Assembly (NCBI GenBank): GCA_964035545.1
Contig: CAXIUT010000088.1
Location: 1 to 27,476, forward strand
Source of the DNA: Bugula neritina
Lineage: Eukaryota; Animalia; Bryozoa
Direction of reading: 5' to 3'
Length of the DNA: 27,476 bases
The position numbers were made by a program, and so were the translations under genes. The notes below the pieces were generated by a model that ran no database searches, had not been told where the DNA came from, and was given only the letters and a program-made list of their open reading frames with translations. Shown here one piece after another: positions 160 through 27,325 of the stretch (position 1 is the stretch's first letter; the number at the start of each line of letters is the position of its first letter).

Positions 160-2769
160 TCACGATATCAAATCATACTTGATAAAATTAGATATTCTAA
201 TAGGCTGATTTACTATAATTCTAAATCTACCTACCACCGGCCTATGATCACTTCCCGCCACCTTCACATCGCTATACCCCAAACACTCACAACTATGATC
301 CGGTTCCTCACTCGTCCAAAAAAGTATTCGATCACACCAAGAAGGAACTCGACTCTTCTCCTAGGTATAATTCCCATTATTCTTATCCAATTTGTAAGTC
401 GGAAGAAAGTTTATATCAGGCTACTAATAATTTTCTATAATATATGGAGTCCCCGGTTACCTACGAATTGATATCAGCTGATCCTGTTCCATCAGAATAT
501 TGACCACCTCTTTCTTGCGTTCCTCATTAGTCACACTTTCCAAAAGCTACTTCGTTTGGTTGTACTCCCCATTGATTCTAAAATTAAGATCACCATAAAA
601 AAACTTATAATCACTCTCCTATATTTCTGATTCATTTTGTACTCCTTCCTTACTCTGCTGAAAACACTTCTTATGAATCTGAATAAAATCATCCACTCGC
701 TCTTTGCTTTTAGAATGACCTGCAGTCAAATGCGCACAAGTAAAGCAAACAGTTGTCTAGTATATCTTTAACCTAAGAGTAATCGAACCTTTGTTTCCAA
801 ATTGACCTCCCATACCAGTTTTAACGGTGTCCTTTTGAACAGCTTTGATCGCATGTTTCCAAGAATCACTTATAAATATTATTTGCATCAAACCTACCAT
901 CTAGACCTTCTGCACAAATATCTTCTTGTCTTTTCCTGAATTTAATATTTTCTATAACAACTTTCCCCATTTCATAGAACTCTCACTTTATTATTCATTG
1001 TTACTCATTACGTTATTAGTACTCAACTCTATCATTTCTTCTATTCCAAAAACAACCAAGTCAGCACCTTCAGTAGCTTATACTACCTTTTCTAGTTGTT
1101 TTAGTTTTTAAGGATCAGTAGCATTGACATTCCAAGTTACTACGCAAATGTGAAATTCAACATTTTGCTTATTCTTAAGCATCGAATCCATTCTGTAGTG
1201 TTTATGATATAATACCAAATCAAGTGACTTCTGTTTCATTTCATCCATAAATTTCTGATTGTAAAGTCTTTGCAAGGAGATCAATGAGTCTGACAAGTCA
1301 TCTAAAAACTTATTCTTTTTAGCATTGACAGCTCGACTGCCAGTATAGATCATACTTTAGAAATCAGCCTTGTCTTCCCATATTGACTTGAATCCCACCA
1401 TCAACCAACTCATTTCCGACTGATCTCCCAAAAACAAGTCAGATATCAACGACCCAGAAGTATGCTCAGATACAACCTGTTCCTGCACCAACTGCTAATG
1501 CATCTAATAATAAAAAAAAGCCTGTAAAAATCGATTTGTTCTAAAAAGACAATCAAGACTATTAACCCGAATGATTCCTCTTTGCAAGCGTTTGATATCA
1601 TTAGTCAAGCAATTCCACTTAAAGAACCCAAATTATTTAAGCAATGGATCTATTTTACATAACATCTGGAACAACTCGCCTACAGATTAAGTATTAAACG
1701 CTTTATTGATATCAAAGTATATATATCGACAAAATGTATCTATAACTTATGAACTCTCATCGATGATCTGTTCAAATGCAGTAGTTAGTAAATTTTAACC
1801 TTAAACATTACGTTACAACAAATTGACCAATAACACACGTCCATAATCAGTTTTTATCGAATTCAAATGGTCCAATAAAGGTAAAGAAGTTAATTATTTG
1901 TTTCTAGTGAGTCGTATTTTATCATTTTGAAATTTTTGCTACCAAAATATAGGAACACTACCAGATATCGATACCAAACTTATTATTTCATCTCCTATTA
2001 CTAAACATTGCTCAGTTTAGTAATATTGAGCACATTTAGAATTCTAGTCAATTCCACGACTATAAAACCGAGTCCCAGAACGATACTTAGAACGTCTAGA
2101 TATCAGATAGTATTTAACCATTTTGTTACTCACAGTCAACTAGTATTTACCATAATGACCCTGCAAAACAGGAATTAACCACTCAAGAACAGTCTCATCG
2201 ACATTCAATGCTTTCAACATACCAGAATTCCAAAAGAACATATCTCTCGGTTTAGGTCTCAACTCAGTTCTCCATTTCTGAAAAGTTAAGGTTAGATCAC
2301 GACTAAATGAAAAATAAAAACTAAAATTGAAAATATCCTTTTTTATGATATTAGTACCTTATAAAGAACATCAAATACATCTCTCTGTCGATTGTTTATG
2401 AATTTGTTATACTAGATGTATCCGATCGATGCTATCTGGTAGACTGGAGTCTAGTCGGGAGGCAAACATGGCTGAAGATAGACATGTTCGACATAGACCA
2501 AAAAGTAGTCTCCTTCTATTTCTAGTACTCCTAGAATAAGAGAGGCAAATTTGATTTAAAAAGTTCCAGAAAACTAGAATTGTTTGGATTAATCTAACTT
2601 TTGTATGATATACCTTCAAATTGTACTGAGTTTGTTCTTTTGTTGATTAAAATTTGAGTTCTAAACTGTTCCTGTAAAGGAATAACCTGAATAGACAAAA
2701 TACTACTTGAATGAATTGAGATGAGTATACGATTTTAAACCTCTTCAAATTCTATTTTTATTCACTCAT
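160..2769 (-). CDS. Synaptojanin-like protein: N-terminal SAC domain (catalytic motif degenerate) plus inositol polyphosphate 5-phosphatase domain; 20-nt introns at 2687-2706, 2594-2613 and 2338-2357
   Basis: Read with UAR=Glu. SAC motifs: FYFSFSRDLT, ISRRSKYRSGTRFYSRGID, YY[E]TEQ, GSVPIFW[E]Q, RVNSLDCLFRTN. 5-phosphatase motifs: TWNVN, GNKGSI, CAHLTAG, FFYGDLNFRI, FLPTYK, PSWCDRILF, SDHRPV. TGA stop at 160-162. Confidence 0.92.
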
Positions 2770-2899
2770 TATAAATATGATATTAAGAAAAGGATGATGT
2801 CAATAAGAGGGTTGTATTTGAATGGATGTAGAAATAGACAGAAAGACAACAAAATAGATGGAAATAAGATGAATTATATATAAATAACTATATATTAGA

Positions 2900-2907
2900 G
2901 CGCCAAA
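2900..2907 (-). promoter_or_regulatory. Candidate E2F-binding site (TTTGGCGC)
   Basis: Exact match to the TTTSSCGC consensus in an AT-rich divergent spacer, about 40 nt upstream of the TXR1-like ATG. Confidence 0.45.
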
Positions 2908-2946
2908 GTAAAATGAATATAAATTAATCGTTCAAATAAGTATAAG

Positions 2947-4358
2947 ATGGGAAAACGTTCAAAATCACAAAAAAGAGCCATCAAACCTAGTATCAGAGAC
3001 TACCCTATCAGCAAATCCAAATCTTTCACCAACAACCTCAATAGCTTCATCAAAATGCTAAAAGAAGAACATAAAGAACTAACCTCCAGATAATATGTGA
3101 CTGAAATACACAAATTCGTTGATAAATACAAAGAAAAAAATAAAAAGAAAAGCTAACCTGTCGCCCACGCAAGACATAAAATCAAAATATGCAAATAATG
3201 CGATGGATGGAATGGAAATAACTGCATGTACCAGTGCACTCTCTGTGAAGACTACTATCATTAAAAATGTCTAGATTAGGATTCCAATTCCCTCAAGTCT
3301 TCTGGACTTTGCTAAAACTGCAATACAGAAAAGAGCGGGCAATTTGATAAAGAAAACTACCTGAATGAGTTACTAGAATAACATTGTCAATAGTGTGGTC
3401 TTTAAAGAGAAGACAGATAGGCATTCGCTCATTGTTTGAGATGTTCGCAAAGATTCCATAAGAAATGTTATGGTAAAAATGTGGTAGTTTGTATCAACTG
3501 CAAACATGAAATCGATGGTAACTATAATATAATTCAGAATAACTAAAACTTAAAAAACAGGTAAGACAATCTACTATCCTTGAATGGGCTAATTCTTCAA
3601 AAAAGAAAGAAATGGAATCTCCAATAACTCTCAACACATCAGCAGACACCCAAACTAAAATAAAAAACTATAAATATTAATAAGATACCAGATCACAACC
3701 TTTCAGATAAAAAGAACTCTTCACCAACTGCTTTGAAGATCTATCCCCTTAAGAAATAGATAAATACAAGTAGGCAATGATATTTGCTATCTTGGCCAAA
3801 AAGATGGAATACACAGAAGAACTAAAACCTATCGATTGCTCCCTAGATATCAGCAATTAGTAGAGTCTTGATTTTGGATTAGATCATATGACCAAAGCCT
3901 AATTAGATGTCTACAAACAATATAAAAAACAACCCATTGGACCCTTCAGATACGTATTCAAATAAGGAATGGGGTATGATGTAGTTGCAGATAAAGATAT
4001 CAAATAAAAAACATTAATATGTGAGTATCTTGGAGAAGTGGTTTCTTTGAGAAAGTGTATCGATCTTTAGACTGTAAGCAAGAATGATTCATTGATGGAA
4101 CTGAGGGCAGGTTATAATTCAGATGAAACTTTAATAATTAGACCAGATAAATACACTAACATGGCTAGATTTATCAATGGAATTAACAACTTCAAAAACG
4201 TGAACAAAGCAAATGTAGGCACCGTTCGAAAGCTAGCAAGAGGATATCCAACAGTGGTACTTTACACATTGAGAAACGTGAAGAAAGGAGAAAGTTTACT
4301 CTATGACTACAATGCTGGAACAACCAATTGTAAATATGATACATCTGGCTTTATTTGA
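2947..4358 (+). CDS. TXR1: TXR1/ATXR5/6-type histone H3K27 monomethyltransferase (two PHD fingers, PIP-like motif, SET domain); 20-nt intron at 3518-3537
   Basis: Two C4HC3 fingers (CK[E]C...CTLC...YH[E]KC...C[E]NC and CQ[E]C...CLRC...FHKKC...CINC). SET region LICEYLGEV, DSLMEL, PDKYTNMARFINGINN, GESLLYDYN...YDTSGFI* resembles ATXR5/6. A single 20-nt GT-AG intron joins the two frames. Confidence 0.9.
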
Positions 4359-4510
4359 ATGTTTAAATGATCGATAGAGATAAATATGATGAGAATACTC
4401 TTTATCAGTAATGAATATATGATGAGATATTTATGATGGTTTAGTTAATCAAAGAATTTATAATTTTGTTTATATATTAAATCAATATTTAAATTGATTA
4501 TTATTTCATC

Positions 4511-7155
4511 ATGAATTATCAACCTCACTTTTACAAACCATACTTATCTCAAGACTAACGACTTAAAAGATTCTATGCCTTGGAAGAACTTAAAGCAATT
4601 CAACCTTATTTTCTGAACATTTTACGACATCAGGATCTCGTCAACAACTTCACTAAATACAGCAACTAATTCTTATAGTCAGTGGTCTTCTAATATAAAT
4701 ATGGCAAACAGACCTTTGAAGATGATCTACAACTTAAAAAGAAGTTTTAATAGTTTTGCTATGAATTCAATGCTTGCTAACTTCAATATCAATAAGATTG
4801 TAGAGTTCAACAATAAAATCTTCAAGAACATTATATGGCGGCGCAATACTCTCAACTCCAAGACAATACAAACCCATACGGACAACAACAGCAAATCTAC
4901 AACCAAGGCTATCCCCAACAAAGCTATAACCAAGGATATCCCCAACAGCAGACACAAAACTATGGACAAGGATATCCCACACAAAATTACAATGAAAATT
5001 ATGGACAACAACAGCAACAAGGATATCCTCATGTATAAGGAAAAACCTATAGAGAAAGGAGAAATCAACCTGGAAACTAACAAAGAAGAAATAACTACTA
5101 AAACTATCAAAATAAAGGATAAGGATAAAGACCTGAAAGAGCATAAAGAGGATAAAGAAGAGAAAGAGGTTAAAAAGGATAATATAAAAAAAGATAATAT
5201 AGAGAACAAGGAAAAAATGAAGAACATTCTAAGAAACATCAACAAAAAGTTGAACCTGTTGTCTAACCTCCTCCTCCCCCACCAAAACCTGAACCAAAAC
5301 CTACAAAATTCACAATTAGTCAAATAAAAGATTTTATCAGTGCATACTCTAAAGAAGATTTGGAAAAACATGCAAATCCTGAAGTCGTAGCTAAAGCTAA
5401 AGAGATAAAAGAATGGAAATCTTAAGAAGTAGAAGTAAAATTAAAAGATGATTACAAACCATTTAACAAGAAACCTTCCAAAAATTAAAGAGAAGGAGAT
5501 AAAAGTCATGTAATCAAAACTGGAGTTAGAAGAGATGAAGCTAAGTAAGCTTAAAGACTCGGATATAAAACTCATACATAAAATAAAGTTCAAATTGTAG
5601 TTGGAGCTAAATAAACTCTTGAAACAAGACAAATGAAATAGTAAATTAAGAAAAAAGCTTATAACTTTGAATAAATCCAAAAATAAAGAGATCAAGGTTT
5701 AGATCAAATCTAAAAAGACAGAAGATAAATAGTGTTCAATCTTAACTTGATTGTTCCTGAAAATTTAAAAGACATTGAAAAAGATCTTTTACCTTTTCTC
5801 TTCAATAGTGAAGCTGTCTGTCAGGCATTGATCACAGAAATTATAAAAAAAGCTTGGGATCAACCTAAATATGCCAGTACATATGCCCAACTTTGCTACG
5901 ATTTCAGTAAAAAATCACTGGATAAGTTCAAATTTGAAATGAATAAAAATGACAATCCTTTTAAGTTTATGCTTATTGAAAAAGTACAACATTCTTTTGA
6001 TCAGAAAGCATAAAAATTCCCTGAATTTTAATCAAACTAAGATAAAGATATTTTCCTTAAAGATACTAAAAAGAGAATTCTTAGTAATGTTAAATTTATT
6101 GCTTAACTAATTCTTAGCAAAATCCTCAAAAAAAGAATCATCAAATATTGTATTTCACAACTTTTTGAATCTTTCCTCAACCACTACTATGCATTTATCC
6201 ATGATGCTAAAATATAAGATAGTATCTATGATTTCCATTATTAAGCTATCATCGAATTTATCTAGAATATTGGATAAAAGTATGAAGTTATGGATGAAAA
6301 AGATAAAGAAAAAGAGCAAAAAGCAGTAAACAATTATAAAGAAATCAAAGATCACATTGAAACTGTATTGAACGTTAAAAGTCCTCCTAATGCATAAACT
6401 ATCGAAAAGCTAGAATTATGTTCAGGAGATTAATACTTTTAACTTCTTGAATTTATCAACATGAATTATATGCAGAAAAAGTTTGCCAGACTAAGTGCTT
6501 TACTTCAAAACTTAGTTGAAAGAAGAAAAAATGGTTGGCAAAAACATTTGAGTACAGTTGATGGACCTAAAAAGTTAAAAGATATCCAAGATGAAGATTA
6601 AGAAATGCAAGGAAAAAGCAAATAAAACAAAGTAAATAAAGAAAAGATGTAACAATAAAAACTTGATAAGAAGGTGAAAGAATTATTCTAAGGATGGTAA
6701 ATGGACAAAAAATAATAACTCAGAGAAATCAGAGATATCTACAAAAAATACAGCATTTATGGATTCTATCTATCTTTCTTAAAGCAAGTTGCTGATTAAA
6801 AGAAAGATAATGTCATCAAAAGAGTAGCTCTGTTCCCCATAGTAGTCGAAGATTAAAGGTTCAATCCCAAAGAGTTCAACAAAGCTTGGTTTGAAGCTAT
6901 CAGAGTAATTATTTATTTATTTAGTATTTAGCTTTTGGTTCAGGAGATTTTCCTTTCTGTGGAGCTGCAATTGCAAAAATTTTGATGGTTTTGGTTGAAA
7001 AAGTTGGCAAACTTGAGAATTTCTATGAAAAGTTTGAAGACTAAGATGAAGAATTCTTCATGGAATAGATCTTCCAGAAATATCACCATTATTCTCAAGA
7101 CGAAAAAGCACTTAAGTACGTGAAGCCAAAGTCCAAATATTCAAAACTCATATGA
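4511..7155 (+). CDS. eIF4G-like MIF4G-domain protein with a Q/N/Y/G-rich low-complexity region; 20-nt intron at 6905-6924
   Basis: MIF4G signatures: LNLIVPENL, EIIKKAWDQPKYASTYAQLC, LIEKVQHSF, KRILSNVKFIA[E]L, LLQNLVERRKNGW, GPKKLKDIQ. Single frame from ATG 4511 to the intron; TGA at 7153-7155. Confidence 0.82.
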
Positions 7156-7198: not shown

Positions 7199-9575
7199 TC
7201 AATCATTTTCTATCTCCTCTGAACTATCCTCCTCGTCGCTCCACTCCCACACCCCGATTTTATCCTCCTTTAGTACCGCCTCGAATTTTAGAATCAGAGC
7301 CCTCAACTTTGGATCTGCCTGTTCCGGATTACCTTTAACGATACCTCTCTCTATAAGTAATAAAATAATATTCTACTTATTTTTGTATGTAGAAACATAC
7401 TCTCCAGTCTCTTTCTTGAATTGATATTCATCTCCATCCATCAAAGTATTTCGAATTCGTTCAAGATAGCTCTCATTTCGGATAGGTTTAGTCAAATAAA
7501 GCTTAGCCTTTATACATTGTTTTTATATCAGTCTTAGATCTTCAGGAAGTTCTCTAAGATCCCCTTCCTCAACTGTCTGTTTATTGCCCCAATCAATAAA
7601 CACGACTTTTATTTTTTTAGTTTTTACTACGATATTATTAAAACTTACTTGATAAAATCAAAGCGCGGTAGTATTAATCATAATAAGGAGCAGCTACCAA
7701 AGATCCAGTAACCAAAAGATCTTTTGTTATTTTAGTAAGTTTTTTTGGAGATAACTTATCAGCGATCATATCAAGTGTTTTATAGTTACTTTAAGGTTGA
7801 ATACAAACAGTTTAACCATCTTAAACCCAAGAAAACTTTCCTCTGAACTTTTGGTTTTGCATCTCAAGAGGATCCACAGGTTAAAAATTAACTAGTTTAT
7901 CACTCCATAATCCTCTTTTTCCTTTCCTAGCTACACTTTATGCTTCTTTAAATTTTTATGGAACTCCTCCTTCTCTATCAGTATACACTAAAGATTCTTA
8001 AAGTAAAATTTCTTGAAGAGTTTTTCTTCCCTAAAAACTAACAATTCCAACAAAGTTATTGGTTTCTTTTTGATAATTAGAAATATTAACAAAAACTGAT
8101 CTTTTCTTTAACCTAGAATCATATAGGTCTTTATGATCTTCTTTCATCTTTTTAACCTAGTCAAGAAGAGGATTAATATTGTGACTCTGAATTCCTTGCA
8201 GTTTCACTTTTAAAGCTACATTTTTATCTTGTAACCACACTTTATAAGTTAGAAGATCAATCATTCCTTCAAGAACTCCAATTTCACTTTCTGTTAGTCT
8301 TTTTAACACCTCGTCTCTACGATAATAGTAGATATCTTATTTATGAGTATTAGGACCAGTTAAATCTTCAGGTCTATGAACTCCAATTTCTTTAGAATGA
8401 AGTCCTCTTCCTTTCTCCTTTGCTTTCTTTTCAAGTTCGGCTAGTTTGATACTCAAAATAGAGTTAGCAAATTCCTCTCGAATAAAGCCCCAACCTTGAT
8501 CAACAAGCATTGATTAAAAGTCTTTTGAGTCTTTAGCACGAATAAGAGAACCAGTTATATTCAGTCCTGAATCTTTGTGAAGATAAACATTAACCTCTTG
8601 ACCTATAAGCTGTTTTCTGGCAAATTATCGTGAATTAAATGCTCCTACTTCATCTCCGACTGGACATCTGACCATAGCTAATTCAAGTTTGACTTTAGCT
8701 CCTCCTTTTTTTGTCACTTCTAGTATGTATCCATCAAAAATATCACTAACTTAGCCTACAAAGTTGTTTTTTGCATAAATAAATGCTAAAATTTAGCAAT
8801 TGCGACTAAAAACTCCTAAATGAGCTTCTTTAGCTTCACTTTCAGCTTTCAAATAATCGGAATAAGATGCTCCTAGAGTAGCTAGACTAGCTGTATTAAT
8901 TATTCCCCAGCCTTCATTAAGAATTCTTAATTAAAGCTCTCGATTAAGAGATCCTAGCAGTTAAAATCTTTTCTTTACAAGATTGTAGATTGGTCTATCA
9001 ATGACAATTTTTAATTTAGAATTTTATTAAATAAAGCTAGCATAAGTATGTTCAGGTAGGCATTCGAAAAGAGTATTGATAGCTTTGAGTCTAATAGGTA
9101 CAAAATAAATTTTAGAATCTTTTTGAAAGCTAACTACAAGTTCTTCAGCAAGCCATTCTAGATTGCATTTAATTTATCCTCCTTTAGGAAAGAGTTTCAA
9201 CATCTATTTTCGATTGGTTTGCACATCAATTACAGCAATTGATTTCATCTTCTAATTTTTCTCACATTTAGATAATCTTGATTTCTGATCTGCATTGTAA
9301 ATTTTACTTTAATCCAACTCCTTCTTCACCACCTCCATTGCCCCTGATTCTATCTTTTCAGTCAGAAAAGCCTAGTTCATATAACGAATATGTGTTCCTG
9401 CCTTGTTGATAGTACATTAAATATTTTTTCCGATAAGATCTTCGAGGAAAGGTCTTGAAGCTGGACCAGGTATTATTTTGAATCCTTCAATAGGATACTA
9501 ATATGATTTTTTTTGAGGATCAGTTAGGAGGAGATTATTGTGAGAAGAGAGTGAAATAACTCTGAATTGTTTCAT
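7199..9575 (-). CDS. Tudor staphylococcal nuclease (Tudor-SN/SND1-like), divergent; 22-nt intron at 7627-7648
   Basis: Repeated SN motifs (SR[E]FARKQLIGQEVNV, LVDQGWG, EKKAKEKGRGLHS, A[E]SVARKGKRGLWS), Tudor motif YYRALI...VVFIDWGN, and C-terminal GVWEWSDEED. TGA at 7199-7201. Confidence 0.85.
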
Positions 9576-9838
9576 AATAAAAGAATATATCCATATCAAT
9601 TTTATATGAGCGAAAAGAATTAAATTCTCCTTAAATATTTTTTAAAAACTATTTGTTTATTTTTATACTAATCAAAATGAATCAAATAGGTACAATAACA
9701 TCATAGATTACTTTTTTTATATTATTTTTAATTATTAGGCAAAGAATAATAAGTTCTATATTTTTTCCCGATGATAAAACAATAATAAGTTAATCAGCTT
9801 AATATTAATTAAGTAGATAATTTCTCAACTTTTTCTGA

Positions 9839-11038: not shown

Positions 11039-12934
11039 TCAATCACAATGATCGTCGTAATCAAATGTATGGCCTCTCAGACATTCAGTACATATCTTCA
11101 AAGGAGGACTATAAATCCGACAGTTCTTGTAGTAAGTCTTAAAGTCAACAGGTGATACTGGTGTTACTGGTGTTACTGGAGTTTGACCTCCTCCCTGACT
11201 CACACATTGACTATTTTCCAATACTTAACCACTTGGACAGCATAATCCTCCAACTGGGCTAGCTCCAGAACTGCAAGTCAAACACTTTCCATTATTTTAA
11301 TCTATTGAGCCACAATTAGAATTTCCAAGTGAACAAATTCCATTACTATTTACATAATATCCAAAAAGACATGTGACACAAGGAAAAGCAGGATTTTTAC
11401 CTGTACATAATCTACAATTTCCACTCAAAAGTTGATGCTTAGCAGCGCATTGAGTACAAATAAAGAATTAATTAATATCCAAGCAGTTGGGAGGAAGAAC
11501 TGCACATATCCCTCTTATCAGTTTAAACCCAACAATGCAAACCAGAGTAGTTGAATTAGAATTCTAGGCACAGTTAGTACCGTTCCAAGTCAAATTGCCT
11601 GTACATAAGCCGCAAGAACCAGTTTAGAAGTTCCAAGTAGTACAATTTTATGAATTAGTCGGTTGAACACAAGTTCCATCAATAAGAAAATATGTATTAT
11701 CGCACTAATCACAGTTTTGATTGATTATGCTGAAGTTAGAACAGCCTGATGGAATCGATGTGCAATTATTTAGTAAAGTTGAATGGTATTGGCCAGTAGG
11801 GCATCCTACAGGAATACAACTTCCATTGCTTAATTCATAAGCAGTCGAAACACAAGCTGAGCAAGTGCCGTTCAACAAAACAGTTGAACAACTCAAGTCA
11901 ACACAATAACTTATCAGCAAATGCTTACCACTTTAGCAAAAGGGAAGACTTGGATTTATGCACTTACCAGCTATTAGGGTATACGATGAATTGGCACAGG
12001 TCTTGCAATCTCCAGTGAAAGGATCGAAAAATCCACAGGTAGGACTCACATCATAACATTTACCAAAACGGAAATATTTCCTATCTCCACAGTTAGTTGG
12101 GAATAGACATACACCATTAACCAAATTATAACCTGAGAGACATGCTGTACAAGTGAGAGTTCCTGGAATATGACTGATACAAGGAAGACCAGTCGTTGAG
12201 AATCCTCCTCCTGAAGCGCAACCTGCAAAATCGCCATAATAATCAGGTTGGTTGGTACCGTATGGACAAACAAAACTACTTGTTTGATAGGTTATAGTAG
12301 CTGATACTGTTGCAGGAGTAAAAAAGATAAGTGCATAATATCCAGTAGCTAACTGTCCTAATGAGTAACTAGTAACTCCACCTGTTGTGGTTCCAGACAA
12401 AAGCTGTGAAGAACCTGAGGAATATTTTCCACTCAGAGTCAAAAGAGTTATTGTTCCACCACTTGGAGACAAAGTAACAGTGATAGATTGACTACTTTCA
12501 CCTGGAGAAATATAAAAGTATTTTAAACCATTTATTCTAAGAGCTCCACTTACACTTAGAATAGCTGAATTTCCTACTGATGCAGTCAAGTAATAGAGAG
12601 TTACACTAGTCACAGATGATACTGTTACTTGAATATGATATTGGGCTGTTGCTGTAACTGTCCAAGTAGCACTACTTGGACTTCCACTCAATGATAAAGT
12701 TGTAACAGTGGCTAGATTGCTAGAATCCATAATTTTTACCGACAAACCGGCAGTGCTTCCTCCATTGGGAAACTGTATTGCAACATTGAGGACATCATCT
12801 TTAGTTAGACTAATAGGATAGGATGGATTAAGATAGCGACTAGTGGCCGAAGCATCATAGGTATAGCTCAATGTGCTTAAAGAAAGAGCAAAGGGAAGTA
12901 GAAGAAGGACTCCAAGGATATTTACTCTTATCAT
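11039..12934 (-). CDS. Secreted or surface protein: signal peptide, Ser/Thr-rich beta-rich N-terminal region, then many CxxC furin-like Cys-rich repeats (about 631 aa)
   Basis: ORFs 11933-12934, 11705-11920 and 11039-11221 are in one frame and join through TAA/TAG. Hydrophobic N-terminus (MIRVNILGVLLLLPFALS), repeated CxxC..GY.L.NG.C units, TGA at 11039-11041. Confidence 0.88.
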
Positions 12935-13388
12935 TTGCTATAACTAATTATTATTAGCGCCTGTAGAATAAAGTTGCTATTAAATAATAATTTACTCTGT
13001 GAGAAACAGCCTTAAAAGGACATTAAATGATCTTTTAAGTCTTTTTGTATTGACGTATCAAATAAATTCTGCGTGATAATAACAGAATTAAAAGTTAACT
13101 TGATAAAAAAATATTTATAATTCATTACTTTCTTTTTGTGTTTTAACTTACAATGAAAGATTTCAACCATTTGTGGACATTTTTTAGTATTATTAGTTTT
13201 ATTTTGTCAATTTAAAGGTTAATATTCAATAATAGAATTTTTGTTAATCAATTGAAAAGGAGATTAACTCTCAAAAACCTTCTATTTATGATATTTCATT
13301 CATAAAATAGATAAATATAGAAGTTCTAATTTATATTTTTTTTATGACCAATAAGATTTATGAATTAATATTTGTTTTTATTTTATAA

Positions 13389-16300
13389 ATGTCAGAGATA
13401 AGAAGATTTTCCAGATTATCTAACTCCAATAAAAAAGGAACACCCTATCGACAACTCAACGAAGACAACCAAACCTAGCGCTCCAATCTTGACAAAAGTA
13501 GATATACAGAAGTCACCATCGAAACTCACGATCAGTAAGTACCTTTCATCGCTCTTTATAAACCAAATTTTAACATAGAAAGAAGAAGACTCGAAGCTGC
13601 TTCTAAACTAGGCAGCGTCTTTCAAAATAGTGAGAAGTTAAGAGTACTTTACTGTTTGAATAAAATGGTATCTCTTGGTCCTCAATAAAAAACAATGAAT
13701 CTTAAGTTGCTATATTTAGCAAGAATATCCAAAAAGATGTAAGAAAAAAGAAAGCAAATAATATTTAGAAGTATAATAATAAACAAAATCAAAGTTAACG
13801 GTTATTTTTTAGCAAGCAAACTAATATCCAAAGTTCATAATAGTGTTTTAGTCAGAAACATAAAACAAAGTATGACCTAACTGAGAAGAAACAGACTCTT
13901 GATGATGGTAAAAGAGCTAACAGATAATAATGAAAACGGAAAATAACTAAAAAATCTAAGAGCATAGTTATTTAAACTAAAATAATAATCATTTAGTTAA
14001 TAATTCATAAATTCATCAAAAACAATCAATAAGAACACATCAAACATTTTATAAATCATATAAAATAATAATTATCATGATGATATAAGAAAATAACTAA
14101 AAAGATTTTAGCAATTAAGAGTGCAATACACTCCTCGTAGAAAATAAGCCTTAGATAATGAAATAATAATATCAGTAACAGGTAACTTGATAACTTCATT
14201 TCAAAGAAAAGTTCAATAATACTAAAAATACACATAATAATTAAAAATATAGCTAAATGACTATAAAGATGTCTAAGGAATAAATCAATTAAAACAGATA
14301 ATAAAATAGAAATAAAACATAATAAAATAGACATAAATATTTGTAACATAGTTATCAAGAATGGACATCGATTTGAAAAAGTTTACCTCATAAAACAAAC
14401 TAATGATAGATAAAATAGTATCAACTATCACTTCTCAAGATAAAAAACTATAAATAAAAATTAAAAATCTATAATAAACATCAATAAAAATATCAAATTC
14501 AAGAACATACATTACCAATGTCATTTTAACTCTTATTAAAAAGATAGAAACAATACAAATATAAAATAAATAAAAATAATCAATAAGAATATAAAATTAG
14601 AAAATCAGATAATAATAAATTAGAAATTAAAGAAAATAATTAGAACAAATTAAAAGATAATTATAACAAGTTAAAAATTAACTTAAACAGTAAAAAAATA
14701 AAATAACTTTATTGGTTTAAAAAAAATAAATTAGAAGAGGACTATAAGATCTCAAAAGAAAATGGAAAGGAAATTAATAAATTAAAATGCTAATTTAATA
14801 TATTGTCAATCTTCAACTAAATGTTTAAGAATTAAGTAGAAAACAATAATAATCTACCTTTTAAAATCAAAATTAATAAGCTATCTAGATTATTAAAAAT
14901 TATATCAATAAAGGTATCAATAACCTTAAAGAATCATTGAATCCACCCAAATTTACATAATACAATAAAATAAAAAACAATTTGAAATAGCTAGTACCTC
15001 CAATTGATTAGACCTTTAAGATAGCCTTTCTGAAAATAAAATAATTAAATGAATCAAAAAGATTTTCTTCACAAACAAAAAAAATATAAAATAGATAACA
15101 TCAAAAGACTCAAAAATAATAAATAGATCAAAATTAAAACTAACTTACCTAAAGACTTTTCTCTCAACTAAAAATAAACGAATAATAATTTGAAAAAATA
15201 AGCATATAAGGTAAAAAATCAATCCTATCAAAAATAGATACTCAATCAGGTTTTATAATCAAATAACTAAGATAAACTATACTACAACTTCAAAAACAAC
15301 TTGAACTGAAAAACCCACCTAAAAGTAATGAAGGAAATACATCTATTACCAACGCTTTAACTAGAATATAAAAAATAGTCAAACAACATTCTCAAGAAGA
15401 AACTACAACCAATGAAATGTAAAGAAGAAATGTTTAACTTAATAATAAGTTATAAGAACAAAGAAAACATTATTAAAATCTTATCAATAAACTACAAAAA
15501 CAAATAACATAAAATAACACGCTAATTAAGCAACAACTATCAAAAAAAGCATAAAATCAACCTAAAATAGTTCCTATTCAAAATGATAAAAATTAAGAGT
15601 ATTTATAGAGACAAATATAACTTCAAGATTAAATAATTCGTCTGAAATCTCAAATATAATCAAATTCAGCATCTCATAAATAAGAATTGATAAAATAAAG
15701 AACATAAAATAAAAGTCTATGGACTAAAATAGTATAAATATAAAGTTCAATTTCACAAAAATCATATTAACTCAAAGAAACCTCACTTCAGTAAACTACA
15801 GGAAGTTTAGGTCTCACTCAAGCATAATTTTATATCTAAAATGATAAAATTCTAAATGATCTACGTCAAGGATTCCTTATTTTATAAAAAAGAATTCAAT
15901 AAATAAAAGATCTCATCACAAAAGACTCATAAAATTCAATCTCATTAATCTTCAATAAACTATAATAACTATCAGAACACATCAAAAGATCATAATCAAA
16001 TATATTACAACTATAAAATAAGATAAAGTTGATGTTTAGTAGTCAATAACAAAAAAATAATGAATATCAGCATCAAATATCAACAACTTTATCACAAAAA
16101 CAGACCTAAACTATCTAGAAATAACATACAAGATAAATATAAAAAAGAAAATAACTAGTCACTATCAATGAACAACTAAAATAATAATTAAATAAAATCA
16201 GAACAGAGTTGTCATTACTAAACACCAAAGATTCTTCAAATTAAATAGCATAATTCAAATAAATAACACTAAAAAATGAATAATTATCATCGAAAAACTT

Positions 16301-18068
16301 CCTATTACAAGAAGAACTCATCAAAATCAAATCACAATTCTAAATGCTATCACATAGATCAACTTCAAACAACTAAAACTAGCACTTCAAACTGTTAATA
16401 TCAAAAAATTAATAACTATCAACAAAAAATTATCAACTACAATAAGAACTACTAAAAATAAAAGCAAACTTAAATATCAATAATACAACAAACATGTAGA
16501 ATAATCAATTTAAAATAATATCATAAAAAAATGAACAACTAACCTCAATCAATTTACAACTACAAGAATAACTACTAAAATTAAAATTATCATCACAATC
16601 GTAAATTAATATATCTACTACATCAAAATACGATAATTAACAATTTAAAATGCTGGTTTAAAAAAATTAATTACTATAAACTTAAATAATCAAAATCAGA
16701 AATTAATAAATTAATTCATCTAAACATGATAATCAATAATTTTTTAAATATAGAGAAGAAAATCAGATAATTAGAAATAAAATTAGCTAACTTTAAAGAT
16801 AACAACTTAGAAAAAATAATTAAGTATAAAGAGTTTAAAGTAGGTTAAGACAAACTTAAAGTTTTTTATCAACATAAAAATAAAAATCTAACAGTCTAAC
16901 ATCATAAATATCAAACCTAAAAAGATAGCTACAAAGACTACACAGCTAAACAGACAGGCTAGTCATAGAAACAAGATAATAAGTAAAAAAAATACAAATG
17001 GTCCTCAGATCTCTATAAGAATAACTAGACAACAAATCAAAATAATGCGATTCCCTACAACTAAATCTAAACTAACTATAAAAAATAAACCTACATCTTT
17101 CCCAATAAAATATAAAATACCAATCATAAACTAAAAATATCACACATCATTGCATGTAACTATAAGATAGAAACAACTAACTCAATGGATAACTTACACA
17201 TTTGAAAGCTGATTTCTATTCAATGCAAATATAACTACAATCCAATCGTAGCACTAAAATTCATACTAATGATAACATCAATCTCCTTCAAACTTAAATC
17301 AGATAAAAATCAGATACGATCAGTAATATGCTAGAACAATCAAGAACTAATTCCAATAGCCTCAATCAGCAAATATACTAACTCAAAGAACAATTGCTAG
17401 TACAGTAAAGAAAATATGAAGAACAACTTTCAGTTAAAAATCTATTAATCAATCGACTATAAAACCAACTAGTATAACTATAAAATAACTTGAAATCAAG
17501 TGAACAAAAATATATATCACGAGAATAACCAACTTTAAGACAAACAGTCGAATCCTCAGAAACAAAAGATCGATAAATATAACTACTCAACCAACAAATA
17601 GCCAGTCTACAATCATTTCTAGGAGACCTAAGTCATTAATACAAATAATTATAAAGAAAATACCATGAATAAAAACATCGGTTCGGTAAATTCTATGATA
17701 TCAGCCAAAGTCAACAAACAATGGAATAAATCGATAGAGCTATTCACTCACTACCAGATAATACAGAATTAACTGAGTAAGTTAAATCTCTAGTAGTTAA
17801 TAACTAGAAATTACAATACAGTATTGAAGAATTAGAGGTTTAAAGAAGAAAGCTATTATAAAAGGCACGATCTCAACCCGAAAGATAGTATGTAGTAGAA
17901 CTACTATTCAATATACTACTTGGAGCAAGAAAAATATCAGCACAGTCTCAAAAAGGAAACGCTCTATGGAACTAATTAGTACACATTAATGAACAGTCTC
18001 TTGAAGTGGGAGAACTGTTTACACAATTGTAACAATTCAGTTTAAAATTGTTAGGCAGTTCTGGATGA
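13389..18068 (+). CDS. Large coiled-coil protein (about 1559 aa), function unknown
   Basis: ATG 13389 and TGA 18066-18068 are in the same frame. The K/E/Q/N/I/L-rich heptad-like sequence is very rich in TAA codons. No intron was needed in the parts read codon by codon. Confidence 0.75.
16250..16700 (+). repeat. Four degenerate internal peptide repeats (about 43-aa spacing) within the coiled-coil gene
   Basis: FK[E]ITLKNE[E]LSSKNFLLQEELIKIK / FKLLISKN[E][E]LSTKNYQLQ[E]ELLKIK / FKIIS[E]KNEQLTSINLQLQE[E]LLKLK / FKMLV[E]KN[E]LL[E]T[E]IIKIR. Confidence 0.7.
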
Positions 18069-18155
18069 TCTTAACATATGTATGAAATATAATTTTGTAT
18101 ACCCTAGTAAACTTTCATTTAAAGAAAACTTTCAAATAGTTGTTAGCATATTTAA

Positions 18156-18568
18156 ATGAACTCTAAACACTTCAACCCGAAACTCTCTTACTCACTCAAA
18201 CTCAAAAGACTCCAAAGAAACATTTAAGACCTAGAATAAGCCACCAACATCTTGGAATCTCTACCCAATAAAACTATTCAAAAAATATGGAAATAAAAAC
18301 TAGAAAAAGATCAAAACTTCAAAAACTAGAAAAACAAAAGCATTAACAAAGGACCCTTCAAACAATGCTTAAGAAAAACTCTCTTATCTTTTAAGGTAAA
18401 TAATTTATAACTTAGAATTCCCAAGAAGAAATGAAGAAAGAAATTGAAGGAAAACTAAAAGCGATTGACCCTCAAGTGATAGCTCTTGAATAAAAAATGC
18501 TCAAAGAACTAAAAGAAATGGTTAAAGTATTAAAAGAAAGACATAACAATACCCCATTTTAAGAATGA
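18156..18568 (+). CDS. Small hypothetical helical protein; 20-nt intron at 18396-18415 (alternative in-frame ATG at 18078)
   Basis: Open frame under UAR=Glu, canonical GTA...TAG intron, TGA at 18566-18568. Confidence 0.6.
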
Positions 18569-18605
18569 TTGATAAAATTCTTATTATATTTATGTAAAAT
18601 AAAGA

Positions 18606-20066
18606 TCAACAATAGGTCGCTAAAACTGCCCAAGGCTCAGCCAATGATACAGGTAAATCAGTACTTTCAGGTTCCTCAGCATTACATCCAGCCCATTTCT
18701 ATATTTCACCCTGCATTTTATCTATTTGAATCATCTCATATTTAACCATGCTCAATATTGGAAGCATCTCTAGATCCTACAAATTAATCCTCGTATATAT
18801 CCTTTCCAATACTTTATGAATTCCTTTCAAGACTGATCCTATTTGGATTACATGTTTTCGATCTTTGGACTAAAGCATCTCCATACATACTCTAAGAGTT
18901 TCTACACATTTTTAATGTTGGGATATAAGTTGGTTTAATGATATTTTTCCTTATTTTCCCTTTTCTCGAGGAGTAGTCGATCGGCTTCTCTCGCCTTTTG
19001 ACTGCGTGTTATCAATATTTACAAACTGATGATCATTCTTTGTTTCTGATGGAGTCTGTTTATGATAATTTTCCTTAAACATCTCAAATTTAGACTTAAA
19101 CTAAGAACCCTTCACAGGAGTCATCGTCTTCTTTGATAACTCATCGATAGCCAAATGAGTTGTATGAAGTTCTTTTATCCTTGAAAAACTTTTAAGAGGA
19201 GAAAAAGATTGCTGTGAACATGATAAGTTTTCCATATTAACATCTTTTAAATGCATTATTTCCTCAAAGAATTCTTCCCAGTTCATTCTAGCCTTACAAT
19301 CTTTCTGCAAACACTTCATAATAAACCTTTTCAAGTTAGGAGCAATATTCACAGCATCAAAACATAAAGGTTTTTCTTCAATAGTCGATATTAAAGTTGC
19401 TATCGAATTAGATTCATAAGGACAGAACCCATATATCATTTCGAACAGAATAACACCTACTGACCAAATATCAGCATTGACTGAATATGCCTATCCTTTG
19501 AGAATTTAAGGTGCCATGTAGAGAGGTGAACCCAACATAGTTCTAGTCATTGTTTAAACAGCTAGTTCTTTGCAAAATCCAAAATCAGCCAATTTGAAGT
19601 TACTGTTCTTGATGAGAACGTTTTCAGGTTTTAGGTCTCGATGCATAATATTATTTTTTCTAAGAACTCTCAAGCCAGCAACTAATTGACTAAATATCTA
19701 AAGAGCTTTTTTTTATTCTAAAGGCCCTTGTTTTTTGAGAAGGTCATGGAGAGTTCCTCCTTCACAGAACTAATAAACAAAATAGCAATTATTTTTGGTT
19801 TGAAGCAACTCGTAAAACCTCACGATGTTAGGACATGGCTTTAATATTTGATGAATAGATAGCTCATTATTGATACACTCTTTCACTTTATCGTTGTCAG
19901 CCAAGGTCTTATTGCTGATTACTTTTACAGCAAAAACATTCCCATTATCAAGATGCCTAGCCTTAAAAACTTCACTATAAGCTCCTTTTCCTAACACATC
20001 ACCTAGCTAGTAGCGACTGACGATCCTACGCATATGGACCTCCCCCATTCGAGAACCATTTTCCAT
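18606..20066 (-). CDS. Ser/Thr protein kinase, ULK/Atg1-like (486 aa)
   Basis: LGKGAYSEV, FAVKVI, YFVY[E]FCEGG, IMHRDLKPENVL, KLADFGF, LGSPLYMAP[E]IL, DIWSVGVILFEMIYG. Intronless; TGA at 18606-18608. Confidence 0.93.
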
Positions 20067-20141
20067 TAGAAGACCCCTTTAATCTATTAAAAAATTATTT
20101 TATAAATTCATACGATCTATCAAACTCCAATACAATATAAA

Positions 20142-21354
20142 TCAATTCTAACATTTAAAGAATGTTAAGTCGAAGTTAGGATTATAATTTTACTTTTTCT
20201 CTTTTTCCTATTAGGAGTCCTCCTGAAAATGTTCGTATTAGTCATTGTTTGACTAATAAACCCTTTCATTTTGAGGATAAAAAAATTAGTCGTCATCTTA
20301 GTAAAAATAGTTGTGATGTCTGCTTCCCTTCAAAGATGGCTGCTCGATCTTTTAAGTCAGAACTAGAAGTTGTGATTGAAGTTTCTATAAAGAACTTGAT
20401 TAGTATTTCCATTCCTTTTATGCAAAAGTATTTATTTTAGATTTAAAAGATTCTATATTCTACTTAATCAAATTCAAAGAAATATTGTCTTTTGGCTCAG
20501 TAGACTACCTTTTGAACATTGGCTAAAAAGAGTTTATTTTGTGCTAGTAAGAATCTATTTTATTAAATAAATTAGCTAAAGTATTCTAGACTAAATACTT
20601 CATTTTAGATAGTTTAGTACCATTATACTTTATTAATTTCTATTCTACTTGACTTATTTTTTGTATATTTTAATTTTATCTCGATCCCATAGTTTCAATA
20701 ACCACCTTCACACTAGCCTAGATATCAGAGATTCTATCTTTCAAGTAGTTATACTATCCTACTTTAATTGCTTACTTTTGCAATAACCTTTCCTATTTGT
20801 TACTTCTATTTTGTTTCTGTTAAAGAATAAGCTGACATATAACTTGCTCTTTCTCTGCTATCTTCTTCTGCTGCTCGAATAGTATTTGCCTCAATTCGCT
20901 GATAATTCTTAATCTTATAGTTTTTACTTAGCATTCGCCTCTAAAAGTTCCTTCATTTTAGCTTAAAATTCTATTTTAACTGAAGCTATCTTTGCTTTAA
21001 TAACTTAATTCATTCTTCCATCATTTCCCAAAGACAGAGTCATTTGTTCACATCCTTAGCTTTATTTCTTTTTATGATTAGTAAACGGTTTAGAGCAAAC
21101 TCTTCCCAATTGAACAGATCCATTCTCAGTACTGGCAGTTCCTTAATAAAAGACTAAATTACCAACAGTTTGCTAATAATCTTAAGGAAGTGAATGAGCA
21201 GAATTAAGATGATTATATTTATGCGAATATCTATGTTAGAACAACTATACAGACTGATTTTATGGTTACTTGTTCTTTTGCCCTGAGATTATAATAGCCT
21301 TGGCTTAGGAATATCAGCCTCTCCACTTTTTAATGTTATACCTTATCTTCTCAT
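20142..21354 (-). CDS. Hypothetical coiled-coil protein (about 390 aa); 20-nt introns at 21231-21250 and 20908-20927
   Basis: Removing two 20-nt GT-AG introns gives a 1173-nt ATG-to-TGA frame. Confidence 0.65.
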
Positions 21355-22339: not shown

Positions 22340-23130
22340 TCATAAATAGTAACGGTTTTTAGGTGTATTTAAACTCCCTTTGCTCCTTTTACGGTAAAAG
22401 GTACTTGTAATAGAATGTCCTTGTACCTGAGATGAAGTTTCTCTTGTTTTATGTCTTACATTTCTTAGGACTTTGGCATCTAGAAGTGTCCTTATCTTTG
22501 CTTTTTAGCTATATTGACTTTTTATGCATTTTATTTTGATATAAATTTATTGTATTCATAAACACAGACAACTCTATTTAGTTCCACTTGCTCTAAATAA
22601 CAAAAATATATACTTTTTAAAAGACAAACTTATTTTAGCTGCACAGTGTTCATGAGGTGATCCTTTGAGGGTACGAGTAAGATATCCATGAAATTTTTGA
22701 CTAGTAACTCTTGTTATTCCACGTTACTGACATAATTGCTAGAACCATAGATGAGTAACTAGATATTTTTTCTTCATAATTGAAAACCAATAAGAAAAGC
22801 AACGATGTCCAGAATGTTAAATTTAATACTCAGTTGGTCTCAACCTAATTAATCTAACTAATCTAAAATTTACGAATACTTATGATTATGTTTAACTTCA
22901 TACGCTACCAAAGTTATCAATGAAACGAACTATGATTTAGTGATAGAACCTGATCTCTGAAAAAGATCAATACATCTCCTTTACTACTATTGACTGATAA
23001 ATAAAAAACGACCTTCATCTAGAATCAACTTGAATTAAAGAATATTAATTGACTCTCCATTGATCTGACTCAATAGCGTAGCTAGTTATCTCGTAAATGT
23101 GATTCTTTGCCATTTATAAAGTTTAGTCAT
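22340..23130 (-). CDS. Hypothetical protein with degenerate EF-hand-like motifs; introns at 22994-23012, 22854-22873 and about 22593-22613; 3' part frame-ambiguous
   Basis: DLFQRSGSITKS[E]FVSLI and GESINIL[E]FKLIL resemble EF-hand loops. The reading frame below about 22600 cannot be resolved without assuming indels. Confidence 0.45.
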
Positions 23131-23165
23131 TTTATTTATAAAATACCTTATATTCTATAGAAAAC

Positions 23166-24273: not shown

Positions 24274-24311
24274 TATTGCATACTATCTATATCAATTATT
24301 TCAAATGTAGA

Positions 24312-24813
24312 TCATTCAAGGTTCACTATCTATAGTTAAGCTTGAGGGCACTTTGCAACTTGATGACTAGATTCCTCTCCACTAACATTTTCAACTTCCT
24401 CTTTTTCCTCAACCATCATCTCCTGCTGAGCCACTTCTGTTTCCTTTTCTGCACTTCTGCTTTGGTGTTCAACATATTTCTGTCCATCGACAGTTTGTGT
24501 TTCCCAGATAATTCTGAACACTTTATCCGCATCTTCAGGAGTAATAGATGGTCTCATTTTTCTACCTTTAAGTCTAATTTCAATGAATTTTTCTTTCTTC
24601 TTTCTGTCAGTATCAAGAGGGAACCAATTATTGAGATATCTGGTCGACACTCCCCATTTATGATTAACTCCTTCAGCACTGATCAAAGAGCAAGTTTCAA
24701 TTTAACTGAAAAGAATAGTTTTTAGAAGTAGCTAAAGGGAAATAGTACTTGTTAATAAGGATAAGGTCTTTATAGACGACAACCTGGCTATCTTGGTAAA
24801 GAATTTCTGACAT
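24312..24813 (-). CDS. Conserved-looking small protein (possibly PH-like beta domain, YYFP...WG...WFPLD..R) with an acidic tail; apparent +1 frameshift at 24719-24723
   Basis: MSEILYQDSQVVVYKDLILINKYYFPLATSK / TILFS[E]IETCSLISAEGVNHKWGVSTRYLNNWFPLDTDRKKKEKFIEIRLKGRKMRPSITPED. The ATG-to-TGA span is 502 nt (3n+1). Confidence 0.6.
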
Positions 24814-24925
24814 TTAAAAATCGAATATTAACCCAACTGCCAAAAAGAATATTTATGACTTTAAAATATTATTGAAGAATAAAAGTTTCATATTTTCATA
24901 AAAATTCAAATAATAATTGTAAAAT

Positions 24926-25848
24926 ATGGTAGTCATCATCTATAAAAAAAGTTAAAAAAATAACTTTGCACTAGAATGTTCAAGTGAAACTAAAGTATCA
25001 ACCATCCTCAACATACTCATCTAATGTACCTGTTACTTACTCAGATAATAACCTCAGAGTTTATCTCGATAGACTTATATGGAGTGTAGAATAGCTAGCC
25101 AATAAAGGAGTACTCAAACCAGCAGAATTACAAAACGTTTCCTGGTAAGACTTTGAAAGCATTAAAAAGAATTCCAGCATCTGCCTTAATAATTTCTTCA
25201 ATATGGAAGAAAGCCCATTGTATAACCTCCATACAGATTTGTTGTAGATAAGCATCACCAAAGATATGGAGTAGTTGTGGCTGAAGAATAAAGATAAGGA
25301 ATGCTAAATGCAGTCAAAGAAGCTAGAAAGTTGTTTTAATTTAAAGGACAAATTATGGATAAAGATCTCTTTGTTGAAGCCATCTAAAAACTCAGAGAAG
25401 CTGTGATGATAGCATACCCAGGTTATATTGATCTTCCAGAGTGGGAACCATCACTCCTCATGTTCGAAGAAAAAATTGAACTTGAGATACTCTAAACTTA
25501 AAATTTTTAAGTTTTTGATGAAAGGCCACTATCTGGTGGGCTGGAAAACAGCTTTAAGCAGACAAGCAGATTGGCTAGTACATAGGAAAAAATTAGAAAA
25601 CAAAAGCTATTGTAAAAGTTCAGAAATGGGGAGGTCAGCAGCCTCTCCGTTAACCTCCAATCGACGCTTAAACCTACAACAAAATGGTGAAATACTACTA
25701 CAAAAAGGTATAATAGACCAAATAGTTATAAAAGAAAAGCGTATAGACTCATTACTAGAAAGTCTAAACCCGAAACATGAAGGCCCAACTGCACATGCAG
25801 GAAGACATCCGTTATAACCATTTTGATCGCAATAGTCAATAAACTTGA
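24926..25848 (+). CDS. CFAP298: Cilia- and flagella-associated protein 298 (C21orf59/FBB18 family); 19-nt intron at 25026-25044; two apparent 1-nt deletions (about 25166 and 25522)
   Basis: VE[E]LANKG, LREAVMIAYP, ATIWWAGKQL, YIGKN[E]KTKAIVKVQ, R[E]PPIDA[E], MVKYYYKK and MKAQLH match CFAP298 motifs as recalled. Confidence 0.88.
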
Positions 25849-25886
25849 TAATATATTTTAACATAGTTGAGTTATATTATCGATAA

Positions 25887-27325
25887 ATGAATCTCCACGA
25901 CAAAAGACTACTCATAGCCCACTTCGGACTTACTATTGGCTGTCTACTTTTGGCTATCGGACTGCTTGTCTTTAAAATAATCAAAGATCTTCTCGGAATA
26001 AATCAAGACTATATTGATCCTGGATGTACTTAGATATATTTCAATAGCAAATTCGGATATACTTATCTTTCTCTTATCGTTTAGTTCATTGCAGTCAGTG
26101 TAGCTATCGTATGCTCTTTAATTTTATTTATTGCTTTTTTGGCTCCAATCAAAAAGAATTGTGGAGTAGAAGAATCCATAAATATCAATATAAACGAATA
26201 ATTATTGTATATTTTTACAGGAATTGCTTGTTTAGCTTGGATCATACTTGGTGGAAAAGCTATAGAATACTATTTTGAGGGAGACAAATGCAGCAATTTA
26301 AGTAACTATACTACTGATCTAATTAACTATATCAGTATAGGAGGAGTAGTTCTCCAATTAACACAAATGATTCTCCTTCTTATTCTTATTTACCAACGAG
26401 ATCCTCTGTTAGAAATGGTTAACCTCAATGAATTGAAGTAAAAACAGCAAATTTAGGAACAATAAATCCATAAGATGACATCAGAATATGCGAAAGATTA
26501 TGTTGAGTATATATCACAGCAAAAATAAAATACTAAACAAGGGCTACTGGCATATTAAAGTTAAATTTATAAGGAACTGGGATTGCTTCAATGGTTAAAC
26601 ATTAAAACAGAAAATAAAATCAAGAAGAATCATCTTATGAATATTAATCAGTAGAGGAATAATTACATAAAGAAAGTAAAAATAAAGTAGGAAAAATGCC
26701 TTTTTAAACACCTCTAAGACAAAGAAAAGATTCAAATATTTCTTTAGATGATTAGTTTAATAGCTAAAGAAATCAACTGATAAAATCACCACAAAAGATA
26801 ACATAAAATGGATAAAAACCATAAAAAAAGAAAGAATTAAAAGTAGCAAAAAATGTTTTTGAAGACACTTACTCACATGAAATAGAAGACAGCTGGAGAG
26901 AACATGAAATGCTTGAAAAGATGAGCACTGGCTCAAACAAAGATAAATAACCTCTAAGTGAATAGATAGCTAAACTTCTAAAGATAACTTTATTCAATAA
27001 TTCATCATTTTTTAAAACAAGCAAAAAAGTGACGTACAGGAATAGTGTCCAATTCTTAAATATCTGGATAGAGACTAAAAATATTAGATAAATCAAAATG
27101 ACTATAAATTCAAAGGAAACAACAAAAAACAAAATTATGAGAAAGAACAACTTATATTCAGCAAGAAAAGAAAAGATACAAAAGTTAAAGTAAAAAATTA
27201 GTTTGACTAGAATGAAATAATAAAGAAAGAAAGGTTGTCAAGATTTGGATAGGAATGGGTAAAATAAAGATAAAAATAATAAAAGTAACTCTAAAAAGAT
27301 CTAAGTTCAAGATATAAAAAGATGA
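25887..27325 (+). CDS. Hypothetical membrane protein: about four TM helices then a long hydrophilic tail; frame change near 26510-26560
   Basis: Four hydrophobic segments lie between 25910 and 26390. The first frame ends at TGA 26778-26780; a second, natural-looking frame runs to TGA 27323-27325. Confidence 0.6.

Follow-up and report, generated by a model that had tools for sequence, protein, structure and literature searches.

Which genetic code do the genes of a 27,476-base contig deposited with a bryozoan genome use, and to whom do those genes belong? The contig (CAXIUT010000088.1, C97 in our numbering; the whole of it is called the window below) is one of 321 in the 216-Mb Bugula neritina assembly GCA_964035545.1, and its predicted proteins run through many TAA and TAG codons. 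A reading made from its letters alone had proposed that UAA and UAG both encode glutamate, with UGA as the stop. We conclude with high confidence that the window comprises an entire macronuclear chromosome, from a ciliate whose nuclear genes use NCBI table 30 (UAA and UAG as Glu, UGA as the only terminator), the ciliate being either a companion of the assembled animal or a contaminant of its sample. Telomeric repeats were read directly from the sequence at both ends, as CCCCAA at 1..81 and GGGGTT at 27389..27476 (both on the forward strand), and these C4A2/G4T2 caps mark the window as a complete 27.5 kb macronuclear chromosome, which carries roughly 15 genes and uses both strands.

The open frames of the window depend strongly on which codons are taken as stops. 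With TGA as the sole stop the longest frames reach 4962, 2568, 2208, 2076 and 2016 nt; the maximum is 1044 nt with TAA alone as stop, 1377 nt with TAG alone and 1002 nt with all three. Thirteen coding frames, comprising 6,568 in-frame codons, contain TAA at 5.05%, TAG at 1.39% and no TGA at all, and TGA makes up 2.62% of codons in the two off frames of the same genes. This pattern lies far beyond chance. Because in-frame TGA is absent from all 13 coding frames, the window does not carry the signature of a code without a dedicated stop, in which UGA would also have a sense meaning (Trp).

To establish what TAA and TAG stand for, we used stop-free pieces of the window proteins as homology queries. 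An exhaustive protein search with a 72-aa piece of the SAC domain returned 10 short fragments, the best of which (130 aa at 79% identity) led to a 2.5 kb metagenome scaffold, L070, bearing the orthologous gene of a GC-richer relative; pieces of the kinase and of eIF4G, used in two word-indexed searches, brought in 32 further fragments. Contig look-ups in public metagenomes then supplied syntenic loci of related ciliates, representing at least 11 lineages, and these were aligned to the window codon by codon. Synteny is kept in these relatives both for the series 5-phosphatase, PHD-SET, eIF4G, Tudor-SN and Cys-rich protein and for the kinase beside CFAP298. The relatives with conserved gene order (L070-L076, L088 and L099) encode proteins 36-79% identical to those of the window and range in GC from 30% to 50%, the GC-rich ones having far fewer TAA and TAG codons, with GAA and GAG in their place. 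One homologue lies in assembly GCA_041447055.1.

In the L070 alignment (727 codons), the 14 TAA sites of the window stand opposite Glu seven times, Asn twice, Asp, Val, His and Lys once each and TAG once, and the 13 TAG sites opposite Glu nine times and Gln, Gly, TAA and TAG once each; seven of L070's own ten TAR (TAA or TAG) codons lie opposite GAA or GAG in the window. The full set of lineages gave the same picture. Scored by the plurality residue in the relatives, the 118 TAA sites were Glu at 54.7%, Lys at 4.5% and Gln at 4.9%, and the 43 TAG sites Glu at 62.2%, Lys at 0.6% and Gln at 7.6%. The control codons behaved as their known meanings require: GAA (158 sites) was Glu at 64.1%, Lys at 3.2% and Gln at 7.7%; GAG (57 sites) Glu at 80.1%; AAA (298 sites) Lys at 66.5% and Glu at 3.1%; and CAA (115 sites) Gln at 59.6% and Glu at 7.2%. 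Judged by these aligned sequences, TAA and TAG in the window behave as GAA and GAG do, unlike AAA or CAA, and the aligned columns are not mostly Gln, Lys or any other residue. A likelihood test based on substitution spectra measured in the same orthologue alignments ranked Glu best for both codons, ahead of every other amino acid by at least 149 (TAA) and 64 (TAG) log-likelihood units, with Asp, Gln and Lys trailing by 149.5, 230.9 and 346.0 log-likelihood units for TAA and by 63.9, 68.2 and 117.2 for TAG. Among the database fragments, TAA of the window is opposite E in 86 of 124 cases. The relatives' own TAR codons fall opposite Glu or TAR codons of the window and almost never opposite Lys, Gln or Tyr codons, indicating that the code is common to the whole lineage.

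The individual sites singled out by the sequence-only reading fared well, all seven of its codon coordinates proving correct when the letters were read again. In the kinase, TAA at 19506-19508 (YMAP[TAA]ILKG) encodes the Glu of the APE motif and TAG at 19770-19772 (YFVY[TAG]FCEGG) the hinge Glu, the APE site being opposite E in 8/8 database fragments and 3/3 orthologous loci. The others are TAA at 2017-2019 (YY[TAA]TEQ) and TAG at 1939-1941 (IFW[TAG]Q) in the SAC domain, TAA at 8625-8627 in Tudor-SN (NSR[TAA]FARK), and TAG at 25594-25596 (GKN[TAG]KTK) and TAA at 25651-25653 (LR[TAA]PP) in CFAP298. Two internal features of the eIF4G-like gene were also borne out: the 22 Gln codons at 4835-5035 comprise 18 CAA and 4 CAG and no TAR, and the repeat at 5135-5185 alternates TAA with GAA (TAA AGA GGA TAA AGA AGA GAA AGA GGT TAA AAA GGA TAA). 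A further example, a TAG at position 12 of an EF-hand loop, had been given without coordinates, and two pattern scans found no canonical EF-hand loop.

Termination and its factor agree with this assignment. The TGA that ends the SAC/5-phosphatase, SET, Cys-rich, Tudor-SN and kinase genes lies within 0-2 codons of the orthologue's TGA, which, with the lack of in-frame TGA, upholds UGA as the stop, and the orthologue comparison of gene ends gave no sign of termination at TAA or TAG. The ciliate's eRF1 gene (within C314:16300-18800, locus L077, minus strand, adjoined by a tRNA-Pro(UGG) gene) encodes a remodelled stop-recognition N domain, with RASQIKD in place of the host's TASNIKS and a GTS loop one residue shorter; YxCxxxF is kept, as is the conserved Glu55, which is itself encoded by TAA. 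Such an N domain appears compatible with recognition of UGA only, and the altered factor would ignore UAA and UAG, so that termination would occur at UGA alone. The host animal's own eRF1 exons served as a standard-code reference: TAG of the ciliate gene is opposite E at 4/4 positions and TAA at 3/6, and all seven pairings of TAR with E occupy conserved motifs (GGENG, IQEK and RLRMEKRHN among them). Orthologue codon alignments and the animal eRF1 reference thus agree on Glu for both UAA and UAG, and for UAA the database fragments concur.

The sequence-only reading had suggested a search for tRNA-Glu genes with UUA and CUA anticodons; two genes with a CUA anticodon turned up, and pattern-limited searches of the assembled part of the genome gave none with UUA. 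Assembly-wide pattern searches located the two tRNA(CUA) genes on ciliate contigs C10 (C10:16787-16858; L066:48-119) and C256 (L067:42-113), each followed by a T-run of the kind expected of an oligo-T terminator. They are 74-80% alike, and a BLAST search with one of them matched only its one paralogue. In the proposed mechanism, Glu-accepting suppressor tRNAs would decode UAR, the CUA type being seen here and the UUA type not in the assembled part. The better-formed gene, Sup1, has an acceptor stem that begins UCC...GGA and a T arm close to that of tRNA-Glu, together with a D-loop (AAUGGUUA) and an anticodon arm (GGACU-CUA-AAUCC) that equal those of eukaryotic tRNA-Gln(CUG) with one anticodon base changed. 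By its sequence the tRNA(CUA) is therefore best described as a Glu/Gln mosaic, Glu-like in acceptor stem and T arm and Gln-like in D-loop and anticodon arm; its charging is unreadable from sequence, and the decoding outcome is Glu as judged by the alignments.

Several observations weigh against the assignment of Glu to both codons. Overall identity does not clearly place the tRNA(CUA) genes with tRNA-Glu: compared with the ciliate's own canonical tRNA-Glu(UUC), found on C54, they are 53-61% identical, and Sup1, at 61% to that gene, is 67.5% identical to animal tRNA-Gln(CUG) and 72% to animal tRNA-Lys(UUU). TAA outnumbers TAG, yet no tRNA(UUA) came to light in searches that were pattern-limited and covered a partly assembled ciliate genome. 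A pattern with a Glu-type D-loop gave two chance matches on host chromosomes and none on ciliate contigs; one combining TTTAR with a T arm gave only organellar tRNA-Leu, tRNA-Lys and host repeats resembling short interspersed nuclear elements (SINEs); the output of a looser pattern was dominated by a host repeat, with no tRNA(UUA) among the matches listed; and ARAGORN reported no suppressor tRNA in the window or any of the fetched ciliate loci. Finally, about 45% of TAA sites lack Glu in the relatives, which we ascribe to ordinary divergence because about 36% of GAA sites likewise lack it.

Two known ciliate codes offer other meanings for the same codons, and the sequence-only reading had set both aside, as the alignment tallies and likelihoods now also do. 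Under the split code of Oligohymenophorea sp. PL0344, UAA would be Lys and UAG Glu. That organism shares class-level affinity (Oligohymenophorea) with the window's source, TAA is abundant in Lys-rich coiled-coil genes, and one or two TAA sites, such as eIF4G codon 423, are mostly K in the relatives; yet K occupies only 4.5% of TAA sites, as it does GAA sites (3.2%) and unlike AAA sites (66.5%), Lys falls 346 units below Glu for TAA, TAA encodes the APE Glu of the kinase (8/8 E) and conserved Glu positions of eRF1, and TAA and TAG swap with each other between relatives. We accord the split code almost no probability, and regard as scarcely credible its counterpart table 6, in which UAA and UAG are both Gln. 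Table 6 is the commonest ciliate variant, and Sup1 has a D-loop and an anticodon arm of the tRNA-Gln kind that differ from tRNA-Gln(CUG) by a single base, but the plurality of Gln at TAA (4.9%) and TAG (7.6%) sites does not exceed that at GAA (7.7%) and contrasts with 59.6% at CAA, Gln lies 231 (TAA) and 68 (TAG) units below Glu, and the Gln-rich tract at 4835-5035 is written solely with CAA and CAG.

A subtler possibility is that decoding is ambiguous or context-dependent, as in Condylostoma and karyorelicts, with UAR meaning mainly Glu but sometimes some other residue, or termination close to mRNA ends. The mosaic tRNA(CUA) leaves charging open, and it is uncertain where the eIF4G-like gene stops on its 3' side, a relative's frame being 146 codons longer. 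Five genes nevertheless end at a position-conserved TGA, in-frame TGA is wholly absent, unlike in codes that lack a dedicated stop, and TAA and TAG sites show the residue spectra of GAA and GAG, a second residue being nowhere in excess, so we consider such decoding very improbable. It is likewise improbable, if less extremely so, that UAR is Glu in an organism other than a peritrich, the code then having originated twice independently. In favour of that idea, peritrich primer sequences from PMC4103560 have no match in the assembly, and the runs from which the relatives come are not among the named peritrich runs in PMC12411067. The primer null is uninformative, however, as ciliate 18S is altogether missing from the assembly; the lineage is diverse, turns up widely in metagenomes and has the same code in all its relatives; and a single origin of the code in Peritrichia has been inferred (PMC10553269).

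Unambiguous Glu for both codons therefore remains our reading, and on priors the organism very probably belongs to the subclass Peritrichia, the peritrichs, in which the code has been described. Its C4A2 telomere fits Oligohymenophorea, and the metagenome that holds one of the relatives is from activated sludge, where sessile peritrichs classically live. The assembly yielded no ciliate rRNA: a universal 18S word matched only the host array (C6) and C135, the peritrich-specific 18S primers Peri974F and Peri1403R (PMC4103560) had no true match in it, and neither did a ciliate-specific 18S primer. The unplaced C135 (337 kb) carries a complete 18S gene within 17750-19750 (L083) that is 57% GC and not ciliate-like; it may represent a host variant or a third organism, and a second 18S copy lies 167 kb from the first. 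It is unlikely, on this evidence, either that the ciliate falls outside Peritrichia, as a second origin of UAR=Glu, or that, inside it, the tRNA(CUA) preserves the route of reassignment. Such a route might have involved capture of a Gln-decoding suppressor by glutamyl-tRNA synthetase through a changed acceptor half, an idea that accords with the proposed history of UAR from stop to Gln to Glu (PMC10553269).

The code itself is already described, known since 2003, and not new. Its first report, for UAA in Vorticella and Opisthonecta, is credited to Sanchez-Silva et al. 2003 in PMC4967479. The assignment was reportedly widened from UAA to UAR in 2016, in Campanella and Carchesium. UAR is given as glutamic acid in peritrichs in PMC11687900, and PMC10553269 infers a single emergence of this meaning within Peritrichia, probably out of an earlier state with UAR as Gln. 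The identification of the window's code as table 30, the peritrich code, agrees with these last two sources. Like that code, it has TAA and TAG as Glu, TGA as the sole stop, C4A2 telomeres of Oligohymenophorea type, candidate suppressor tRNA genes and an altered eRF1 N domain; it differs in being documented from complete genomic chromosomes, not transcriptomes, and apparently in that the tRNA(CUA) is a Glu/Gln mosaic and not a plain copy of tRNA-Glu. The PL0344 code likewise has UAG as Glu, stops only at TGA and comes with tRNA(CUA) genes, whereas UAA there is Lys and the identity of the tRNA-Sup(CUA) genes to that organism's tRNA-Glu is 69-93% (PMC10553269), compared with 53-61% here. Table 6, as used by Tetrahymena, Paramecium and Oxytricha, reassigns the same two codons and keeps UGA as the only stop by the same route of suppressor tRNAs and a UGA-restricted eRF1, but the amino acid is Gln there and Glu here. 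Blastocrithidia table 31 (UAR as Glu or stop, UGA as Trp) also shows that UAR can be Glu, whereas TGA here is a stop, with 0/6,568 in frame, and the source is a ciliate with telomere-capped macronuclear chromosomes; tables 27 and 28 (Condylostoma and karyorelicts), in which UGA is also Trp, differ again in that the window has no in-frame TGA.

The window is not alone in its assembly, in which about 300 small ciliate contigs stand alongside nine Mb-scale animal chromosomes (C1-C9) that bear animal-type tRNA genes and SINE-like repeats. A C4A2 repeat is found at the start and end of most of the small contigs, and these roughly 300 contigs of an animal assembly are thus telomere-capped ciliate chromosomes, not animal DNA. 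Standard-code annotation would shred their genes, and as the database fragments from relatives are 60-170 aa long, such shredding is already widespread in metagenome gene catalogues. Read under table 30, the ciliate contigs at once supply complete macronuclear chromosomes for a group whose genomic data have been termed scarce (PMC12411067), and the eRF1 variant (RASQIKD, shortened GTS loop) and the mosaic suppressor tRNAs provide material for studying the move of UAR to Glu. DNA nearly identical to window positions 7600-9600 also occurs in sequencing runs that three studies filed under three organism labels; more than one sample thus contains the ciliate, whether it lives there as an epibiont or entered as contamination from a culture or facility.

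Gene identities on the chromosome were obtained from Pfam searches with stop-free pieces, which matched Syja_N, Exo_endo_phos2, Pkinase, MIF4G and SET. At the left end, on the minus strand, a synaptojanin-like gene (SacI plus inositol 5-phosphatase; Syja_N and Exo_endo_phos2) spans 160..2370 in 736 codons, with 15 TAA and 13 TAG, and ends in a TGA at 160-162 whose position is conserved in relatives L070 and L076. It is followed on the plus strand by a PHD-finger and SET-domain gene at 2917..4355, identified by Pfam SET and, for the PHD finger, by its orthologue; its two frames are presumably linked by a small intron, its SET TAR sites are opposite E at 9/14 positions in the orthologue alignment, and the position of its TGA is conserved. 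The eIF4G-like gene (4415..6982, plus strand, Pfam MIF4G), with 51 TAA and 6 TAG, holds the RA-E-RG-E repeat and the CAA/CAG-only Gln tract described above, and has 25 related database fragments; its TAA sites are mostly opposite E. Its 3' end is uncertain, the frame of one relative (species A) extending 146 codons past the aligned end. The final roughly 30 codons of its frame, at 6850-6982, look non-protein-like.

Tudor-SN (SND1-like) lies in two frames at 7202..9671 on the minus strand, with 27 TAA and 7 TAG and orthologues at 65-74% identity; TAA is opposite E at 15/20 sites in species A, and the position of its TGA is conserved in 3 lineages. The Cys-rich protein at 11042..13057 (minus strand, orthologue at 42-43% identity), probably secreted or exposed at the surface, has few TAR codons (8 TAA, 5 TAG), and these vary across orthologues and are uninformative on the code. 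A long coiled-coil protein of 1654 codons occupies 13104..18065 on the plus strand and contains 167 TAA and 22 TAG, with internal repeats in which TAA alternates with GAA. Its composition (TAA 10.5%, GAR 3.9%, AAR 11.1%) is normal only with an acidic TAA, since TAA as Glu gives the usual acidic/basic balance and TAA as Lys would give about 22% Lys. On the minus strand follow the Ser/Thr protein kinase (ULK/ATG1-like, Pfam Pkinase; 18609..20141), with 7 TAA and 8 TAG, and an open reading frame of unassigned function (20145..21020) with 16 TAA, 13 TAG and no in-frame TGA. CFAP298 (kurly/C21orf59-like) is spread over several small exons at 24876..25830 on the plus strand, recognized from its frames and from an orthologue on L099 with Pfam CFAP298, and its TAR sites are mostly opposite E in the orthologue alignment.

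Elsewhere in the assembly, tRNA pattern searches are swamped by two abundant repeats of the host chromosomes C1-C9, one tRNA-derived and SINE-like (...TAGTAAACAC...GGGTTCGAACCC), the other reading CTTTAAAAACGATGCTAGCAAGTTCAAAGC. Two contigs are organelle-like and may be mitochondrial genomes: C214 (65 kb), with 11 clustered bacterial-type tRNA genes and a tRNA to which ARAGORN gave the anticodon 'tta', and C73 (70.6 kb), with two AT-rich tRNA-Leu(UAA) genes and tRNA-Phe genes. Their tRNAs are not nuclear suppressors. Contigs C10, C11, C14 and C15 contain internal telomere tracts besides the terminal ones (in C10 at 9.7, 11.0 and 19.6 kb), which suggests either that the assembler fused several minichromosomes or that fragmentation can occur at alternative sites.

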